A DNA stretch of 64,000 bases from assembly GCA_009859145.1 (NCBI GenBank), contig VRVR01000002.1, positions 256,724-320,723 of the forward strand. Direction: 5' to 3'. The first letter of the stretch is position 1; every line of letters starts with the position of its first letter. Position numbers and translations under genes: made by a program. Shown here one piece after another: positions 1-30,767 of this stretch. The notes under the pieces were generated by a model. That model was not told the origin of the DNA. It saw only the letters and a list, made by a program, of their open reading frames with translations, and searched no databases. This stretch comes from Andalucia godoyi And28. Its lineage: Eukaryota; Protista; Jakobida.

Positions 1-408
1 CGACGCAGCTTCGCCTCAAGACCGAACTTGAAGCCCGTTGCCATGTCGGTTTGGCACTCTCTCGCCGAGATGCCGCAACGCGGGCAGTATCCCCCTCTGT
101 ACCCGACTCCCTGCAGCCGCGGATGGTCGTCCCAATGCTCCTCCGCAAAGGCGGTGAGTGCAGGGACGGACTCGCAAGAAGTAGCAGTGATGCGGCCATC
201 CGGAAACGTAAATGCATTCAGCAAGAACGAATCCTTGAAATCGGGAAAGGGCAGGTCATTCTCCAACACAAAGGCGAGGTAGTGGTTTAGCAGGAGTGCG
301 CCGCGCCACGTGATGAACGACAAATCGCTCACCCAACTCAGGAGGGCAATCGTGCAGATCGGGATGGCGCAGCCGCTCTCGGAGCGCAGCTTTCACCACC
401 TGCACCAT
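1..408 (-). pseudogene. 5' fragment of a frameshifted Fanzor1-like gene (copy 1)
   Basis: ATG at 408 (MVQVVKAALRERLRHPDLHD). Carries the same extra T (gatTgcc) frameshift as the copy at 24311-24312. Confidence 0.8.
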
Positions 409-734
409 CGGGTTCCGAAAACGTGCAAGTATGAAACCGACGGAACAGACAAACCGACAACGTGTGGCGAAGTGTGAGGAGGATGTGGTGCCAAATAAAA
501 ACGGTGAAACATCAAAATACGAACGCAGCAGTGTTTTATGCAATATTTTATTTGACACAACGAAGTCCAAGGTGAAACGGGAGAAAGGGAATGGGTTCAA
601 CAAACAAAATCCAAGCGACGAGAGACAGCGGATAACAGGCAAAAGGGAAAAGGAAACGAGAGAAACGGAAACGGGAAAAAGAAGGACGGTTTGAGGATTT
701 GCTGGAATTTCTGAATTGAATTTTACAGAAGCGC
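1..734 (-). mobile_element. Partial second copy (left end and 5' part) of the Fanzor-carrying non-autonomous element, truncated by the window start
   Basis: Reverse complement of 23926-24659 (coordinates sum to 24660 at both ends). Base-by-base comparison shows 92-697 identical. There are 5 mismatches in 698-727 and clustered compensating indels/substitutions within 1-91. Confidence 0.95.
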
Positions 735-9617: not shown

Positions 9618-10236
9618 TTTGTTGGAAAATCAGCGTCTGAATTTTGAATTGGAGGGTGGGAAGAGAATGTTTTTATTTTTGTGGTTGTCATGATGATCAA
9701 GAGAAAGGATGTTTACAAGTCTGGAATTATGTGACTGTGGTGTATACGAATATTGGTGATGTGCAATTTTCATATCGTGGATGTATGTTTGTCGTTGTCT
9801 GGTTGTGGTCATATTCATGGGTATGGTCGACATGATTGTCGTTGGTTGTGTGAATGTGGTTGTGTGAATGTGAATGCGATTGTGCAGGTCGCTGCAGAAA
9901 AGCGTGTATTTAGGACTTTTTTTAATGCGATGTTCGTTAATGAATTCAACTCTTACATTTCATCCGATTCTCGTTCCTTTTTTCCTCTTCCTCTGTTTTT
10001 TTTAATTTTTTTTTTTGCGAGCTGCTCGCGAACGCATGCAGAGCCGCAAAACTTCCCAGGAGGGAGCGAAAAAGGAGTTACGTCAACGGACGTAGTCGAA
10101 GACCGCACATTCTGTTCCTGTCCAAAACGGCCGCAAGTCGGACTGTTTGAGAGCAGTGCGCTGCGCGCGTTCTTCCGTGTATTCATCGTCGTGACTTAAC
10201 GGACCCTCCCAGCGGTGAATCGAAGAGGCACCAAAT

Positions 10237-11808
10237 ATGTCCGACCAAATCACGATTCTGGACGCTCTGCGGTCGATCCTCGATCGATTCAGCAGTGTTT
10301 CGAACTCTCGTCGAGCGCTGTCTGCGCTCACCAGTCTTTCGGATCATGCGTTTTCACAGTCCTCAGACTCGGCTCGACATCAGATGGAAATGCATCCAAA
10401 TGACACACAGTACCAATTGCCGAATTTGTTTCCGGAGCTGTTTGTTCTTGCGGCACACGCGGCTCTGCAGCCTTCGTCCGTCGACGAGGCTGAACTCATG
10501 TTGAATGTTATATTTCGCACAATGCTTTCAAGTTCATCTGCAGATCACCTGCAACCGAAAATCGAGACAGTGTGCCTGCGATCGATTGGTTGCCTTGTTG
10601 CCGGCCGACTTATCTCTATGCTGGACTGCACATCAAACCCAACTCTTGCTGCCCGTCAGATCGCGATTGTCGTCAAGAATCTTTCAAAAGCAGTTCGGAG
10701 ATTTGCGGCGTTCGACCGATGCACGTCGCTTTCTGCACTAATCGCACTTGCTTTTCTAGTCCAATCATCATCATTGACCTTGCGAGATGGTGCAGTTCTG
10801 CAGTCTCAGACAACTGCCAGTGTGGACCCCCGCAAGATATGGATGTGCAGTTTGAAAGCCGAGACTGTGAAATGTTTGCCTCCGCACCTGTCTGCTGATA
10901 CCGTTTCGCTCTGTGCATCGGCCATTCTGGTTCCGGCACACGTCGTTGCTGCGGATGCAATCCGCCAGCGAACCACAGAAAAACAACAGCGCACTGAGGA
11001 TTCCATCTGCGATTCCGCCACATTGACTTTCCCGGTTGCTGCGATGGACATTCCAGCAGCGCGCGTCATGGCCGTGTCCGTGTTGACCGGGGTGTTGGGT
11101 TCGACGAGTAGTTCCTCTCCGGATTTTTCGCAGATTTGCGAAACTGCTGTTGCCGTCTTCTCCCATTTGATGCTCCCTTTGCAGTATTGCACAGAGGAGG
11201 TGCGTCAGAGTGGTGACTGCCCCGTGGATGAACCGGTGGCGCGGCTGGTGCTGTGCGGATTGCTAGGACTGAGTCCTGAAGGATTGCAACTCGAGGGCCT
11301 TATGTCCGGAACCAAGACAGCTATTCGCACAAGTCCGTTGGCTTGGATTGTATCTGCTGCCGATCCGGGACTTCATGAAAATTTGGCGATGTCGCTTGTA
11401 GCGGTTCTTTCGAATATTAGCGTCTTCCGGTTTCGTCTGGGTGTTTTGCATGACCCGCAGTTTCTTCCTACTGTCCGAGCTTGTGCGCTGGTGTTGCTAC
11501 AAAATCTCCATTCACACTATGCTGTCCCAGGAATGGACCGCGCAACAGCCCTCTTGGAGATTCAAAGGTGTCTTGTCGAATATGCATCGCTGCAGGCGGA
11601 ATCGGAAGCCTCACCGTCCACATCCGAGGCTGTGGATCAGGTTGTTCGAGACAGAATCGTTTTGTCATACAAATCCCTTGGTGTAAGCGTGGTTGCCTCG
11701 GCTGCGTCTGCTCCACCACATGCAGCAACAACAACAACAGCAGCAGCAGCAGCATCCTTTCTCGGAATGTCGTCCTATGAAGAGTTTGAAACTCTAATTA
11801 CCATTTAA
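10237..11808 (+). CDS. Hypothetical 523-aa, probably all-helical (Leu/Ala-rich) protein
   Basis: Long ATG-initiated ORF flanked by AT-rich spacers. No family recognised. Confidence 0.75.
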   Translation: MSDQITILDALRSILDRFSSVSNSRRALSALTSLSDHAFSQSSDSARHQMEMHPNDTQYQLPNLFPELFVLAAHAALQPSSVDEAELMLNVIFRTMLSSSSADHLQPKIETVCLRSIGCLVAGRLISMLDCTSNPTLAARQIAIVVKNLSKAVRRFAAFDRCTSLSALIALAFLVQSSSLTLRDGAVLQSQTTASVDPRKIWMCSLKAETVKCLPPHLSADTVSLCASAILVPAHVVAADAIRQRTTEKQQRTEDSICDSATLTFPVAAMDIPAARVMAVSVLTGVLGSTSSSSPDFSQICETAVAVFSHLMLPLQYCTEEVRQSGDCPVDEPVARLVLCGLLGLSPEGLQLEGLMSGTKTAIRTSPLAWIVSAADPGLHENLAMSLVAVLSNISVFRFRLGVLHDPQFLPTVRACALVLLQNLHSHYAVPGMDRATALLEIQRCLVEYASLQAESEASPSTSEAVDQVVRDRIVLSYKSLGVSVVASAASAPPHAATTTTAAAAASFLGMSSYEEFETLITI

Positions 11809-23714: not shown

Positions 23715-23940
23715 CCTCGCACGTTTTATAGTTTTTTTTTAAAATGACGGGACAGTCCAACCGCATAACGATGGGAAGAAAAGAAGAGGAAGAAAACAGT
23801 TAGCCACTCCCTCTTCCAAGTCTCCAACATCATTATCATTTCATTTTTCCTTTGCCAAAAACGGAGAAGGAACTCAACAGAAGATGCTCATTCTTGCATG
23901 CATTCTTGTGCATTCTGGTGGGCCCGCGCTTCCATAAAAT

Positions 23941-23958
23941 TCAATTCAGAAATTCCAG
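23941..23958. repeat. 5' arm of the asymmetric inverted repeat (TCAATTCAGAAATTCCAG)
   Basis: 15/18 match to the reverse complement of 25353-25370 (TCAATGCAGGGATTCCAG); 20/26 when extended to 23933 and 25378. Confidence 0.7.
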
Positions 23959-24251
23959 CTGCTCCTCAAACCGTCCTTCTTTTTCCCGTTTCCGTTTCTC
24001 TCGTTTCCTTTTCCCTTTTGCCTGTTATCCGCTGTCTCTCGTCGCTTGGATTTTGTTTGTTGAACCCATTCCCTTTCTCCCGTTTCACCTTGGACTTCGT
24101 TGTGTCAAATAAAATATTGCATAAAACACTGCTGCGTTCGTATTTTGATGTTTCACCGTTTTTATTTGGCACCACATCCTCCTCACACTTCGCCACACGT
24201 TGTCGGTTTGTCTGTTCCGTCGGTTTCATACTTGCACGTTTTCGGAACCCG

Positions 24252-25306
24252 ATGGTGCAGGTGGTGAAAGCTGCGCTCCGAGAGCGGCTGCGCCATCCCG
24301 ATCTGCACGATTGCCCTCCTGAGTTGGGTGAGCGATTTGTCGTTCATCACGTGGCGCGGCGCACTCCTGCTAAACCACTACCTCGCCTTTGTGTTGGAGA
24401 ATGACCTGCCCTTTCCCGATTTCAAGGATTCGTTCTTGCTGAATGCATTTACGTTTCCGGATGGCCGCATCACTGCTACTTCTTGCGAGTCCGTCCCTGC
24501 ACTCACCGCCTTTGCGGAGGAGCATTGGGACGACCATCCGCGGCTGCAGGGAGTCGGGTACAGAGGGGAGTACTGCCACGCGTTGCGGCATCTCGCGAGA
24601 GAGTGCCAAACCAACATGGCGAACGGCTTCAAGTTCGGTCTTGAGGCGAAGCTGCGTCGCCATGTCTTCGCATCCATTCCCGCAGACGGCCAAGACGGAC
24701 GGCGTGTTGGTGTCCTTCGGCCCCGAGTACGAGACCATGTGCAGACCGCGTGCGGCTGACGACGAGATGGTCCCCAGAGAGCCCCACCCCAGGAGAAGGC
24801 GCGCGGCAGCGGGGCGCGACGATCAGCAGCAGCAGCCGCGTCAGGTGCCGGCGGGCATGACGCTTGTCGGGATCGACCCAGGGCGCGCAAACATCTTGAC
24901 CGCGTTCGACGGGACTGCCGTGCGCAGCGAGATGCGCAACCAGTGGTATCATGCCACCGGTGCAAATGCGGAGCGCAGGTGGATGGGGCAACGCAGCGGT
25001 CGTGTTTGCGAGATTCTGGATGAGTTGTCGGCGCTGCCGCGGACCAATCAAGAGGCCGACTGGTTTCCGCATCTTCACTTCTACAGGGCGCATGTCAATG
25101 CCCTTTGGAGTCATTTCACGAACCACCAGGGGTTGAGACACTGCGCCACAGTGAACTGCCCATCTGACCGCCGGTGCGTGGGCCGCGATGCCAACGCCGC
25201 GATGAACATTCGTCAGTGCTGGCTCAGCCGACCGCGGTTCTTGTGTCGGAATCCACGCAGTATTCCTAGTGCTAGCGAGCTGGAGTCTCGCGTAGGGCAC
25301 TCATGA
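24252..25306 (+). pseudogene. Fanzor1-like (TnpB-family RuvC) nuclease pseudogene: two frame changes and two internal deletions
   Basis: Removing one T at 24311-12 gives MVQVVKAALRERLRHPDLHDALLSWVSDLSFITWRGALLLNHYLAFVLENDLPFPD. After a second frame change (~24670) come KTDGVLVSF, RuvC-I GIDPGRANI (24869), QWYHATG, then GLRHCATVNC..GRDANAAMNI (RuvC-III, 25184) and RPRFLCR. The RuvC-II Glu region and the first CxxC pair are absent. Confidence 0.88.
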
Positions 25307-25400
25307 AGATTGAAAATGTCTGGTTCTGCCAGGCATTTCACGCCTCTCGTTCCTGGAATCCCTGCATTGATTTAAATGGGTGTGCTCTAAAATACCCGAC
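25275..25400 (+). ncRNA. Candidate Fanzor omegaRNA scaffold at the element right end
   Basis: Hairpins 25275-25291, 25311-25340 and 25377-25398, plus a long-range pairing 25293-25300 with 25382-25389. The position (overlapping the ORF end and running to the right end) is where TnpB/Fanzor omegaRNAs are encoded. The 5' boundary is uncertain. Confidence 0.6.
25353..25370. repeat. 3' subterminal arm of the asymmetric inverted repeat
   Basis: CTGGAATCCCTGCATTGA; lies 6 nt upstream of the terminal hairpin. Confidence 0.7.
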
Positions 25401-25411
25401 TTTTTCTTTTA

Positions 25412-28400
25412 CTAGGACATGATATCGAGGCCGACATATCGAGAAAACGCAACGTTCAGCAGATTGTTGAATTCATCGTCAGACATCTTGCGAGGGCGAA
25501 CCGCAGCCTGCTTCTTCCCAGAGCCCTGTTTGGCGAACTGCTCCATCATGGACCGCGGTATGTCGTCATAGCGAACACACGACAGGGGCTGGCCATAGGT
25601 GCCTTTAAGATGTCCGTCTTCGATTCTCACAAACAGCGAGGCGCAGTTCATAAATTTAAACTTTTGCGACGACAGGTTTTCCGCAACGACGTCGTCAAAA
25701 GACTTGGAATCGTCTTTCAGCTGATCAATAAGACCGTCGGGGACGCGGCCCAGAAAGACGGGAACTTTCAAAGTTCCGCAACGCACGTGATTTCCGTCAT
25801 CCGCCAAGATTGGGCACAGCGCAAACCCGAGAGACTGGATCGGAGGAGGGTCAAGATACCGAACTGTTGAAAAGACTTCGAGGACAACACACAAGTTTCG
25901 GTGCCGAGGGATGTTCTTGAATTCCTGCAATCCGTCCAACCATTCTGGGCACCGAGCGTCGGACTCATAGTCGTTTTTCATTGTCAACTTCACGCCATGG
26001 GACAATCGCATCGGGGAATAGAAATGCCCGGGAGGACATACAGAATATACAACCTTCACAACAGCCTCCTTTTGCGGCATATTCATCCCAGCGTCCACAG
26101 AGACGGAGAATCCATATGCAGGATCGTAACTCGCAATGTAGCTGTAATCAAGAGCCTTCTCATTGCTTGAAGCACGGTTCCGAAACACGTCTGAAATGAG
26201 CTTGTCCAGCTTTTCATCTGATGTTGGAGGCGAACGAAGCACGCTCGACGCAACGTCTCGAACAAGCGCATCTGGCACAGACGAACGCTGCTTCATTATA
26301 GCCTTTTCAGTATCAGAGAGGACACAGAGAGATTGGCCGTAGATCTTTGGAGAATACCGAGTTGCCGGAATCCACACCCCAGTTTCTTGCCACTTGTCAC
26401 GTTTCACATCCGTCAAGCCAAGAATCTTCTTTCCATTGCGAGGTGCTTTCAGCACGCGAAGCAGAACTGTCGCACAACATACTTTGGGGACGTCATCCAG
26501 CGCGGATGCGGTCACTTTGGCAGAATTCAGCAACGAGTGTTGATGCAGACACACTTCAAACCCTCCCTCGTTGAGCCGAACGTCAGTGAAAACTGCAGAA
26601 ATTGGCTGTTTTTCGGTCCCATTGTCGATGAACAAATTCAACAAGGAGTGGCCAACGATGCAACGCTCGACATCGTACTTATCAATTGCCTCAAGTTGCA
26701 CGTGGATGGTGCATGTAGAGTCCAACCCTTTCAAATCGCGAATCTCCAGTTTCGTACCAAATGTTGGGGAAATGGCCGAGCCTCCAACCGCGCAGCATCC
26801 CGATGCAGACTTGCCAACGCTCTTTCCAGCAACGTTGAAGGTCCCAATAGTAACCTTGGAAATCGTCACATTAAGAGGAAGGTTGCGAGCTCCGTCGATG
26901 TAAACATCAATTCCGTCGTCCCTGGACCACTGTCTTGTGGACGCAGGCTTTTCAACGTCCGCCACGTCTGCCGCTTCGTCAGTCTCCGACACAGCATCAA
27001 TAATCGGCACTTCAACGAGATATTCAGAAGCACCAATGGGAGTCCGCTTCAGAGCAACCTCGAGCTTTGCATTTGACAAGCCTACTTTAACAGGAGGATC
27101 ACGCAGAATATCTACCATATCTGCGCCAGTTGGACCAGACCCTGGAACTCTCATGGGACGGCCGTTGAGCTCGAGAACAACGACTCCATCGACGAACTTC
27201 TCCAGATCAACAAAACTGTATGCAATGAAGACGTCCTTGTTGCACAAAACCTGGAAAACCAAGACTGTCGCGGGTCCGATCGGGACATCCAAAAGCCCCC
27301 CGGTACTTCCTAGAGCCAGGAAATCAACAGAGGATATCGATGTCGCGTCGGTGTCCGCAATAAAATACTTGTTGGTTCCAGAAGCCGCTTCGTCGCGAAC
27401 AAGCGGCTTTCCTGCAGTGTACACAATCCCACGAACTCGCACTACAGAAGCCCCACTGAGATCCATCCCGCGAAGTGCGAGGGACTTGAAATAAACTGAA
27501 GAACGCAGAGTGGCAGCGGGGTCAGGGAGAGCGGGAGCGGGCGCAGATCCTGGTTCGGAATCCAGAGTATCGACGCTTTCTTCTTCCAGCTTCTTCTTCT
27601 CGGGAGTCTGAGGGACAACAGGCGGAGCGGCAGCGGGCGGAACCGATGGAACAGACTCCTTCTTTGATGGCTCTACCTCATTCTTCTTCGACTCTTTCTC
27701 TTCCGGTTCTTCCCTCTTTGTAGACTTTGCGTCTGGCAGACTACGCACAGGTTCTGCAGAATACGCGGCCGGAAAGCGGTACTCCCCAAGTGAAATGTCC
27801 GGATTCACTCCAATCTTAGCCTGTTCATCCACTTGAGAAGCAACCGCAATTCGGACAAAGAAGCATAAATTCGGTATCCGTTTTCCCTGGCTATTCAACG
27901 TTGCCGCATCAATTGCAGAATTGACGGGCTGATAGAACACAGGAAGCTTCAGGCGGCCGGTGACCAACGTCCCGTCGCGTTCAAATGGTTCAACAATTGT
28001 CCAGCCGATAGGCTGAGTTTTTGCAGGCGAGTCCGGCGACGCGGCAGGAGCAAGCACAGATTGCAATTCAAACATAAACTTGAAATCTGCAGCGGCAGGA
28101 ACTTTCGCAAATCTTCGGACCGTTGCAAAAATGCAACGCAAGTGACTTACACCATCGGACTCGGCGTCGAAAGTGGGCAGTGCTCGAACCTTTGCCCTTT
28201 GTACGCTTCCATTGAACGCTGCGTAGGCGACCGATACTTGTGTATTGTTCGGAGGCAATCCAGTGCAGTAATCGAAAAACAAACCAAAGCCTTGCTCCGG
28301 AACGTATTGGGAAGTTCTCGAAGACTGCGATGTATCTGAAAGGCCCTCTTGGGCTAGCTGCTTCTTCAACTTTGCCTCCATCACTGCGCGCTTTTGCTCT

Positions 28401-30767
28401 TCCATCCATCGCTCATGCTCCTCTCGTTTGGCAGACTCGCGCTTTTCGCGTTCCATTTCGTCTTTGAGTTTTTGCAACTTTGATTCTTTTGCTAGCTTTT
28501 CCATCTCGAAATCAATGCGAGCTAATTCCTTGACGTGCTCTTCTCGAAGCTCGTCTAAATGATTTGACTTTTGGTCGTTTCTCCTGGGAGTAGCAGCAGC
28601 AACAGGTGAAGGGGACCGGGATCTTTGAGAATTGCTATCATGGTACTCCTCTCCAGCACCAGGATTTTCCCGCTGGTTCCCATGTTTACTCGGATCCCTG
28701 GGACGGCCGGACGGCCGCTCAAGACCGTATGGAGTGCGACCATGTCGGCCATGAATTGGGTCGCGACTTCCAGGCCTCCTCGATTTAAGATCTGAAAGAC
28801 GCTGCACGTGGTCCCGCAGCTTTTCATTCTCAGCATCCTGCTTCTTCAGCAACTCCTGTGTCTCTTGAATTTGCTTCTCAAGAGCCTCGAGCATTGGATC
28901 TTTGAATTGGTTCGCATTCGGGGACCTCGCTGGAGGTTGTCCATAATGTGGGCGAGCAGAAAGTGGGGCACTGGCTGCTGGAGGCGGCATACTCGAGGCA
29001 GAAGACACGGCGCTGCCGAACAGCAGCTTTTCGACCTCTTGAATTTCGTTCAGAATCGCGGGGTCGCTGCCGCCGGACTGCCTATACAAATTTCGCAGTG
29101 AGTCAAGCTCTGCGTGCAGTTGCCTCACATCCGGATTCGCATCAAACTGTGGCGCCGACCGCGGCCTCGGAACGCTTCGATCATGCGGAGCAACAACATC
29201 CAAACTACTCAAAGACTCTGCACAGTGCTCAGCTTTTCGCTGTTTGTGTTCTGCCAAAAATAAATCCAATGCTTCAAGATCCTTTTCATCGGATGAAGGC
29301 CGCGCATCTGCTGCTGCTGCTGCATGACTTGCGTCTGCGCCATAGCGCTCATTCTTCAGTTCACCCAAACGTTTCTCAGATTGGGCGCTTCTTTGCTTCA
29401 AATCCTCGACAAACCTGTCAAGCTCATCAGCAGCATTTGGGGTCTTTAGCTTACTTCGATCTGCGCTGGGTTGGATGGCAATCATGCGTTGTTGAATCTT
29501 TTCTCGTTCCTGCTGCAGAGCTTGGTTCTCAAACTTGTGCCTCGTTTCCTGGATTGCTTGTTGGCGAACCAACTCCTCGCGGTCCCCTCGAACCTGGGCG
29601 CCATGCGACATGAAACTCTGCAGCTTTTCCTGCGCTTCCGTCCTCTCCTTTTCTCTGTTCAGGATGCGCTGCTCTAATCCATCGATCTCTGCCTGAATAT
29701 CGTTCTCTCTTCTGAAAAGTCGTTCTCGCTCTCGTTGCAGTTTCTTCAGTTCCTCTTTTTTCTCACTCTCCAACACGGCCAACTTCTCTCGGTCCAGCTT
29801 GTCCACGGCTTTCCGAGTCCTTTCCATCTCTAATCGAACCACCATATCCTGCTCTTTGCGACTCTCAAGTTCGTCCAGAAGCACCGCCAACTTCTTTTCT
29901 TTCTCGCGCTGCATCAACACAAGTTCCTGCTGCTGTTCTCTAATGCTCTTCTGCTTGTCCGCTTCTTGGACTTTAAGATCCTTTTCAAAAATCCGCATCA
30001 ACCTTTTCATTTCCTCCTCGTCCTTCTTCATTCGACTGCGAAAGTCGGAAATCGACACTTGCGAAGTTGACGCAGAGCCATCCAACACCGCTCGGACATC
30101 TTCCACCGATGCATTTTCACTCCTTGAAAGACGATCCCACAAAAAGAATCGCGTGCCGAATCGGCAAATAATATCAATATTGATGGACGTATGAATGGAA
30201 AATACGCATGCAAAACAAAAAACAAAACAAGAAGAACGAAAGAAAGAAACCCCATAGAAACTCGGGGGTACGGAGAGAGGAGGACGTACAATGAGTGTGA
30301 AGGCAGCGGTCTGCATGCACTGGAAGCCAGTTCTTGTCTGAGCCTTGCGGGATCCGAATACACCGAGTCCACACAAAACTATCGAGCGCAAGCAGAAAAG
30401 CAAGCAGAAAAGAACAATAAGTAAGATAAGCACATGAAAACGATATCTTCTCCGGTGATTGGAAATCATTAGTGCAGAGCACGGCATACCTTCTTCTTGT
30501 GGTTCGCCAATTGTTCCGTCGTTTGAAACGATATTTTACATTCTCTAACAAATGAATACGCAGCGGCCAGAAGAGGAAAAGGCAGAATTAAAATAAAGAA
30601 CAGTAAGTAACAGTTCCCCTCTCTTTTTTTCATTTTCATTTTCATTTTCTTCTTGGTTTGTTGCATGAAATGAATGAATCATTTCTGGAAGCAGCGAAAG
30701 AAGCAAGAAGGGATATATAAAAAAGTACATACTCGCAGTAGTATTGAGCGGAGAACGCAGACGACAT
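25412..30767 (-). CDS. CCDC17-like ciliary-type protein (N-terminal Zn-finger-like motif, coiled coils, C2-like domains), 4 exons, ~1629 aa
   Basis: Exons 30767-30733, 30544-30490, 30378-30290 and 30122-25412 splice in phase to give MSSAFSAQYYCEECKISFQTTEQLANHKKKFC... Later segments GFGLFFDYCTGLP and DGIDVYIDGARNLPLNVTISKV are as I recall from CCDC17-like proteins. Confidence 0.7.

Follow-up and report, generated by a model that had tools for sequence, protein, structure and literature searches.

A decayed, multicopy Fanzor1 gene in nuclear DNA of the jakobid Andalucia godoyi

Fanzor1 proteins are eukaryotic homologues of the RNA-guided endonuclease TnpB. Here, we analysed a stretch of 64,000 nucleotides of the genome of the jakobid Andalucia godoyi (contig VRVR01000002.1, positions 256,724 to 320,723; this whole stretch is referred to as the window). 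Three reading-frame pieces at 24252-24311, 24313-24675 and 24671-25306 join into a product of 352 residues that is homologous to Fanzor1. We interpret 24252-25306 as a nuclease-dead, Fanzor1-derived pseudogene in the nuclear genome, with a probability of about 0.9. The pseudogene lies inside a repeated unit of about 1.45 kb (~23926-25385). By descent it is a Fanzor1. By function it is a relic of a member of this family rather than a working member, because two defining features, the complete RuvC triad and the CxxC...CxxC zinc finger, are both incomplete at this locus.

The setting is nuclear, as the paralogues of the locus are A. godoyi nuclear gene models, one of them on NCBI scaffold VRVR01000063. 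The open reading frames (ORFs) that flank the locus are long, intron-poor and uninterrupted host genes. Such genes on both sides fit the genome of A. godoyi, which is compact (~20 Mb) and intron-poor (PMC7050145).

Homology of the joined reading frames to Fanzor1

We compared the joined product with a profile of 14 Fanzor1 homologues from which all A. godoyi sequences and P0005, the closest intact relative, had been left out. The product scored 129.8 bits in three blocks, in which residues 5-138, 142-293 and 295-338 aligned to profile positions 2-127, 271-406 and 506-548, respectively. None of 2000 shuffled versions of the product matched this profile. The repaired protein thus matches a Fanzor-type profile significantly, and together with the structural evidence below this bears out the Fanzor1 ancestry that the original prediction had proposed from the sequence alone. 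Pieces 1 and 2 alone scored 36.1 bits (E=1.5e-7 at Z=1e6, profile positions 2-127), and piece 3 scored 97.7 bits against the same independent profile, in two blocks at positions 273-406 and 506-548. Piece 1 aligns to positions 2-20 of the family profile and to P0005 residues 38-57, and gene model ANDGO_07022 starts with the same residues. A tblastn search with P0005 residues 60-175 as query showed 38% identity to piece 2. Piece 3 reads HPFPQTAKTDGV...GIDPGR...ALWSHFTNHQGLRHC...GRDANAAMNI...stop, and further stretches along it are, in order, HPFPQTAKTDGV...LVGIDPGRANIL...ALWSHFTNHQGLRHCATVNC...GRDANAAMNIRQCW...stop. It contains TDGV, an Arg/Gln-rich linker, RuvC-I, a helical insert, the site of the second deletion described below, the second half of the zinc finger and RuvC-III. 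The original prediction had described the three fragments, their frames and the retained TDGV, GIDPG (RuvC-I) and RDANAAMNI (RuvC-III) motifs, all of which are present in the sequence at the coordinates it gave.

A phmmer search of 1.84 billion proteins with the 214-residue ORF of the window identified P0005 (687 residues) as the best full-length relative (E=7e-24, 43% identity in two blocks). Proteins of 350-655 residues (P0008-P0022) were also matched, with E=1.8e-10 to 8.6e-4. Ten of the phmmer homologues were scanned for domains, and eight of these contained PF07282 (Cas12f1-like_TNB, formerly OrfB_Zn_ribbon) at E<=0.01, with six of the eight exceeding the gathering score. P0006 and P0007, which were also among the phmmer matches, were dismissed, as their similarity is a low-complexity one to the Arg/Gln-rich linker. 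This linker (PRRRRAAAGRDDQQQQPRQ, 24770-24840) lies between TDGV and RuvC-I and draws spurious multi-stretch matches; its low-complexity words probably degraded a word-indexed homologue search, which was weak, missing the A. godoyi paralogues P0003 and P0004 and returning P0005 alone for an alignment query. The linker could act as a nuclear localisation signal, a feature that has been reported for Fanzors.

Among the sequence searches, profiles alone connected the family to known Fanzor structures, as a phmmer search of sequences in the Protein Data Bank (PDB) with the joined product gave no match. A family profile of 15 proteins, including P0005, matched SpuFz1 of Spizellomyces punctatus (PDB 8GKH) with E=3e-22 over profile positions 28-551. 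A profile of only the A. godoyi copies and P0005 matched Guillardia theta Fanzor1 (GtFz1, 9CER) with E=0.003, and this match covers the TDGVS...DPG block. NCBIfam guided_TnpB showed a weak, sub-threshold match to the RDANAAMNI end of the window product (E=0.0046).

P0005 retains all 21 invariant columns of the family. Its first ~37 residues, where the predicted local distance difference test score (pLDDT) is below 40, are probably over-predicted. The AlphaFold model of the whole protein has a pLDDT of 67 and a predicted template-modelling score of 0.63. In a Foldseek search with this model, all seven top matches were Fanzor1 cryo-EM structures (SpuFz, GtFz and PpFz), with E=4e-11 to 2e-8 and 683-803 aligned columns. 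Their target-normalised template-modelling (TM) scores were 0.43-0.51 for six structures and 0.34 for 9cf1. Matches to Fanzor2, Cas12f and TnpB were confined to ~250-260 core columns. P0005 is thus predicted to have the Fanzor1-type architecture, with its large N-terminal REC/WED extension.

Lesions and lost catalytic parts

Adding the two gaps to the 352 residues that survive puts the probable length of the ancestral protein at about 580-600 residues. Its layout was the one usual for Fanzor1, with an N-terminal WED/REC region, a RuvC domain with a rearranged D...E...D site and a CxxC...CxxC zinc finger. The present copy carries three lesions. A +1 frameshift lies at 24311-12, a deletion in the REC region changes the frame, and an in-frame deletion took the catalytic Glu together with half of the zinc finger.

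Removal of one T at 24311-12, as originally suggested, yields ...HPDLHDALLSWVSDLSF..., and the paralogue ANDGO_07022 (P0026) reads the same string, ...HPDLHDALLSWVSDL..., in a single frame. Its single-frame reading, MVQVVKAALRERLRHPDLHDALLSWVSDL..., is the exact product of the one-T deletion. The alignments of the repaired product to P0005 and to the family profile are gapless across 24311, and the proposed repair therefore holds. Introns of A. godoyi are 55-756 bp long with GT...AG ends (PMC7050145). We rejected introns as the source of the frame changes, since the alignment is gapless at 24311 and both deletion junctions lack sequence rather than hold any extra.

The first deletion removed ~143 profile positions, corresponding to P0005 residues ~176-303 and to most of the REC region. 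The original prediction had noted a second frame change at ~24670. The frame does change there; it is not a separate lesion, as had been supposed, and represents the out-of-frame junction of this deletion. The same junction is read in ANDGO_05534, which begins with MSSHSFPQTAKTDGV, and in ANDGO_07022 (RRHVFASIASIPADG).

The second deletion removed ~99 profile positions. IAYG(A/D) and the first CxxC are among them, as are the canonical RuvC-II position and the alternative RuvC-II Glu (vDEfrT), which corresponds to SpuFz1 E541. In Fanzors the canonical position is replaced with Gly or Pro, and an alternative glutamate takes its part (PMC10530073). The paralogue on scaffold VRVR01000063 (L002) keeps 319 bp at this site, which encode ...RFIIAYGDTSFGPTG...IDEYCTTKKCC... 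and include FIIAYGD. The direct step from ALWSHF to GLRHC and the loss of RuvC-II and part of the REC/WED region by two internal deletions had both been proposed before, and the jumps in the profile match agree with this. Our analysis refines the proposal, as the first CxxC of the zinc finger was lost along with the Glu.

The catalytic residues of SpuFz1 are D383, E541 and D606 (PMC10432273). We placed them through the alignment of the profile to 8GKH, using a chain offset of 394, and they correspond to the family columns iDPGR, vDEfrT and sRDkNAA. At the window locus both Asp codons are kept, and the Glu lies inside the second deletion. Of the zinc finger, only the second pair survives (C-ATVN-C). 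It aligns to C980/C985 of SpuFz1 in the MBP-fusion chain numbering of 8GKH, or about C586/C591 in native numbering after the offset. Of the invariant columns of the family, 16 out of 21 are retained; the five missing ones (Y532, G533, E545, P549 and E569) are all in the second deletion. This indicates decay by deletion rather than by point mutation. With these lesions, including the loss of the catalytic Glu, the copy is unable to make an active nuclease, as had been predicted. RNA-guided cleavage of DNA that depends on a target-adjacent motif (TAM) would not be expected from it, as the Glu is missing.

Could the frame changes be sequencing or assembly errors, so that the locus in fact codes for a protein that is intact or nearly so? 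In favour of errors, the frameshift involves one base of a TT dinucleotide, and the second copy, at the window edge, has several small indels. Gaps of ~143 and ~99 profile positions are too large for base-calling errors, however, and the first junction recurs in two other gene models while the second is in frame. The frameshift is found in both window copies, and agreement between the genome and RNA-seq data was reported to be excellent (PMC7050145). We therefore consider errors an extremely unlikely explanation. The survival of most invariant columns, and the fact that ORFs of 214 and 287 residues were called as genes, would also fit a shortened product that was domesticated as a nuclease-free protein under selection, for example an RNA- or DNA-binding factor. 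Yet the deletions and frameshifts differ between loci, no common shortened architecture is conserved, and the frame of the N-terminal third differs from that of the remainder, which makes domestication hardly credible. A Fanzor1 pseudogene that lost its nuclease parts by deletion is the reading that we follow below.

The repeated unit, its copies and their origin

The unit that contains the pseudogene consists of a leader, a single ORF, a short 3' spacer and a right repeat, and contains no transposase (Table 1). It appears to be bounded by 27-nt inverted repeats, with boundaries that we infer from the sequence. The left core (23932-23958) pairs with 25353-25379 at 21 of 27 positions. When the first 60 nt of the unit were tested against the 105-nt downstream spacer, a repeat match this good was found in 2 of 5000 shuffles and in none of 1157 genomic windows of 105 nt. 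Homology with the second copy in the window begins at 23926, six bases outside the core of the left repeat. The leader contains no ORF with homologues, and the 326 nt at 23926-24251, which include the left repeat, have a guanine-cytosine (GC) content of 44.8%. The right repeat starts 47 nt past the stop codon, and 73 nt separate the stop codon from the end of this repeat. A convergent host gene on the minus strand (25412-30487) has its stop 33 nt beyond the right repeat. A tRNA scan found none, and a scan for tandem repeats found nothing relevant to the locus.

The position of the 3' spacer matches the guide-RNA layout of SpuFz1 (PMC10432273). The spacer is conserved with L002 up to ~25341, and its hairpin is kept there through two pair-preserving substitutions (U-A to U-G and U-G to U-A; two sequences compared). 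The spacer may thus hold the remnant of a guide-RNA scaffold.

Table 1. Features of the Fanzor1-derived unit and its second copy, in window coordinates.
Feature	Position	Strand	Details
Second copy of the element (left end and first ~136 codons)	1-734	-	cut off by the window edge
Left end and left inverted repeat	23926-23958	+	core 23932-23958, CCATAAAATTCAATTCAGAAATTCCAG
Leader, non-coding, T-rich	23959-24251	+	100% identity between the two window copies
Fanzor1 remnant, piece 1	24252-24311	+	frame 3; start codon and first 20 residues, MVQVVKAALRERLRHPDLHD
One extra T (+1 frameshift)	24311-24312	+	exact base placeable only to about 24298-24316
Fanzor1 remnant, piece 2	24313-24675	+	frame 1; N-terminal helical region (WED/REC), ALLSWVSDLSFITWRGALLLNHYL...KLRRHVFAS
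Junction of deletion 1	24665-24680	+	frame 1 to frame 2; profile match jumps from 127 to 271
Fanzor1 remnant, piece 3	24671-25306	+	frame 2; starts HPFPQTAKTDGV, ends with stop codon 25304-25306
TDGV motif	24695-24706	+	
RuvC-I catalytic Asp codon (GIDPGR)	24875-24877	+	equivalent of SpuFz1 D383
Junction of deletion 2	25129/25130	+	in frame, 1-nt microhomology; ALWSHFTNHQ, then GLRHC; profile match breaks off at 406 and resumes at 506
Surviving second half of the zinc finger (C-ATVN-C)	25142-25159	+	aligns to profile GLrwCsstkC
RuvC-III catalytic Asp codon (GRDANAAMNI)	25187-25189	+	equivalent of SpuFz1 D606
3' spacer, candidate omega RNA/Fanzor RNA (fRNA) scaffold remnant	25307-25352	+	11-bp hairpin at 25314-25338
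Right inverted repeat, probable right end	25353-25385	+	core 25353-25379, CTGGAATCCCTGCATTGATTTAAATGG

Several results weigh against parts of this reading. The match of L002 to the window ends at ~25341, 12 nt short of the right repeat, which means either that L002 has lost both of its ends or that the right repeat is not the true end of the element. No target-site duplication consistent with the repeat termini was found among 30 x 35 combinations of ends. The 3' region folds no better than its shuffles (z -0.6 to -1.5) and has no match in Rfam. For these reasons we treat both the boundaries and the guide-RNA remnant as inferences. The single-base frameshift is backed by its presence in two copies only. 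Lastly, Pfam gave no match for the pieces, the joined product or P0005, and it is HMMER searches and structure, rather than a curated threshold, that link the window product to the family.

In A. godoyi, a protist in which the original prediction had marked a Fanzor lineage, the family was seen at six loci. These are the two copies in the window and the gene models ANDGO_05534 (P0002), ANDGO_02339 (P0003), ANDGO_04702 (P0004, KAF0852141.1) and ANDGO_07022. No intact copy was found among these six loci, which do not stem from a search of the whole assembly; every one is broken. The second window copy shares 98.4% identity with 23926-24659 and has the same +1 frameshift, to which -1/+1 indels of its own are added at about 40-75. 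From the left end of this copy it is ~105 bp to the start of a divergent host gene (840-2450). ANDGO_05534 and ANDGO_02339 have two other internal deletions in common (RSGRV/KKQQ and RDQ/VALFF junctions), and ANDGO_07022 shows a duplication of 9 bp as well as another deletion. The L002 copy is 5'-truncated, contains a frameshift and has a degenerate first CxxC (CCAG). KAF0852141.1 (L002 10001-10516), whose database name is 'putative mitochondrial protein', is a Fanzor1 fragment that contains a frameshift and still encodes IAYGD and IDEY. This label looks like a mis-annotation and is corrected here to Fanzor1 remnant.

The first deletion is common to at least three loci. This means that the deletion predates the spread of these copies and that an already-defective element kept multiplying. 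Such an element was presumably moved in trans by a transposase encoded elsewhere. Ghost copies that lack the ORF were not seen within the window. Short subtelomeric scaffolds with transposon- or viral-like sequences were left out of the A. godoyi assembly (PMC7050145), so that an intact copy elsewhere in the genome, as implied by the original prediction, may still exist. The decayed copies may serve as 'ghost'-type guide-RNA donors and as substrates for an intact Fanzor1 on such unassembled scaffolds, an idea that we regard as speculative and rather unlikely. If it were true, a live RNA-guided Fanzor1 system would be present in a jakobid, which would have gained it recently by horizontal transfer, and the spread of the derivative with the first deletion would mean that Fanzor elements are mobilised wholly in trans.

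The base composition of the remnants is foreign to their surroundings. The coding part (24252-25306) has 61.5% GC, compared to 49.8% for the whole window, and the count of 47 G or C among the 60 nucleotides at 24781-24840, given in the original prediction, is exact. GC at third codon positions (GC3) is 73-74% in the remnant and ~52% in the neighbouring host genes, which have a GC content of ~51%. The L002 fragment (10005-10775) likewise has 59% GC in a locus of 44% GC. The GC3 contrast and the GC-rich L002 fragment point to a fairly recent foreign origin, and suggest that the remnants were acquired horizontally.

The gene of P0005 was found on a 4.7-kb Logan contig (SRR12487036; L001 2173-4236), where it starts 12 bp from a divergent neighbouring gene. 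The proteins of its neighbours are not those of A. godoyi; they look cellular, and one has an SPRY domain. No convincing inverted repeats were found around this gene in L001, and L001 has no non-coding similarity to the 3' region of the window. A more distant Fanzor1 homologue of 608 residues (P0016) lies on a contig of 481 kb (ENA ERZ25039481 contig_36938; L003 6001-7827). It adjoins an intein-containing gene for the RNA polymerase subunit Rpb2 and a GIY-YIG/zf-CCHC gene, and the contig looks like that of a giant virus.

These contexts bear on whether the window copy is an integrated fragment of a giant virus or another large DNA virus, instead of a member of a cellular transposon family. Fanzors are common in large DNA viruses, the GC and GC3 of the remnant are far from the host values, P0016 lies on the giant-virus-like contig, and viral-like sequences are mentioned alongside transposons for the subtelomeric scaffolds of A. 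godoyi (PMC7050145). On the other hand, the unit is just ~1.45 kb long and has its own inverted repeats, and its copies sit at several loci in intergenic gaps between ordinary host genes. No viral genes flank the copies in the window or in L002, and the closest full-length relative, P0005, has cellular-looking neighbours. A viral fragment is thus very unlikely, and a cellular transposon family remains our reading of these copies.

Comparison with known Fanzor systems

Fanzor1 has been described in giant viruses as well as in protists, fungi, arthropods and plants, and it commonly occurs as partial copies (PMC10432273, PMC10530073). Within Discoba, Fanzors were already known from Naegleria, whose Fanzor2 is the sole case described there (PMC10432273). 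No mention of Andalucia or jakobids was found in the Fanzor literature that was searched, including searchable supplements. What is new here is the host lineage (Jakobida) for a known Fanzor1 family; the locus is otherwise an ordinary pseudogene. It yields no new mechanism and no usable nuclease, and intact P0005 is the sole candidate for functional work.

The closest parallel to the window unit is SpuFz1 and the Spu-1 elements of S. punctatus. Homology extends to the domain order and the D/E/D columns, and P0005 has the same fold as 8GKH. Like Spu-1 elements, the A. godoyi unit has a single ORF, no transposase and what look like terminal inverted repeats of ~27 nt, and the ~73 nt between its stop codon and the end of its right repeat are where a guide-RNA scaffold would lie. 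Sequence identity to SpuFz1 is only ~15%, however, and neither the REC core nor the catalytic Glu is left in the A. godoyi copy, which has kept just half of the zinc finger. Its omega RNA is only a candidate, and no conserved CA/TAM is defined for it, although GCGCTTC, shared on the 5' side, might be a TAM candidate. S. punctatus has 19 full-length genes, whereas the loci seen in A. godoyi are all defective. GtFz1 and PpFz (Parasitella parasitica, 9CF0) are protist and fungal Fanzor1 proteins of the same fold that, unlike the A. godoyi copy, are intact and active. The GtFz1 locus was reported to be without inverted repeats (PMC10432273).

Fanzor2 and IS607-type TnpB (ApmFz2, 9B0L, and NlovFz2 of Naegleria), as well as ISDra2 TnpB (8H1J), have the RuvC core and the zinc-finger (TNB) domain in common with this family. 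Only ~250-260 core columns of these proteins align to P0005, with query-normalised TM scores of 0.18-0.20, and they do not have the large N-terminal REC extension that P0005, the window remnant and Fanzor1 share.

Internally deleted, non-autonomous DNA transposons, such as derivatives that resemble miniature inverted-repeat transposable elements (MITEs) and 'ghost' Spu-1 loci, likewise spread after inactivation, keeping their ends while the interior decays. Unlike these, the A. godoyi derivatives still carry most of the ORF. They form a small natural record of how an element decays, by large internal deletions rather than point mutations. As a copy without a working nuclease multiplied in this genome, the family bears on the question of what moves Fanzor elements.

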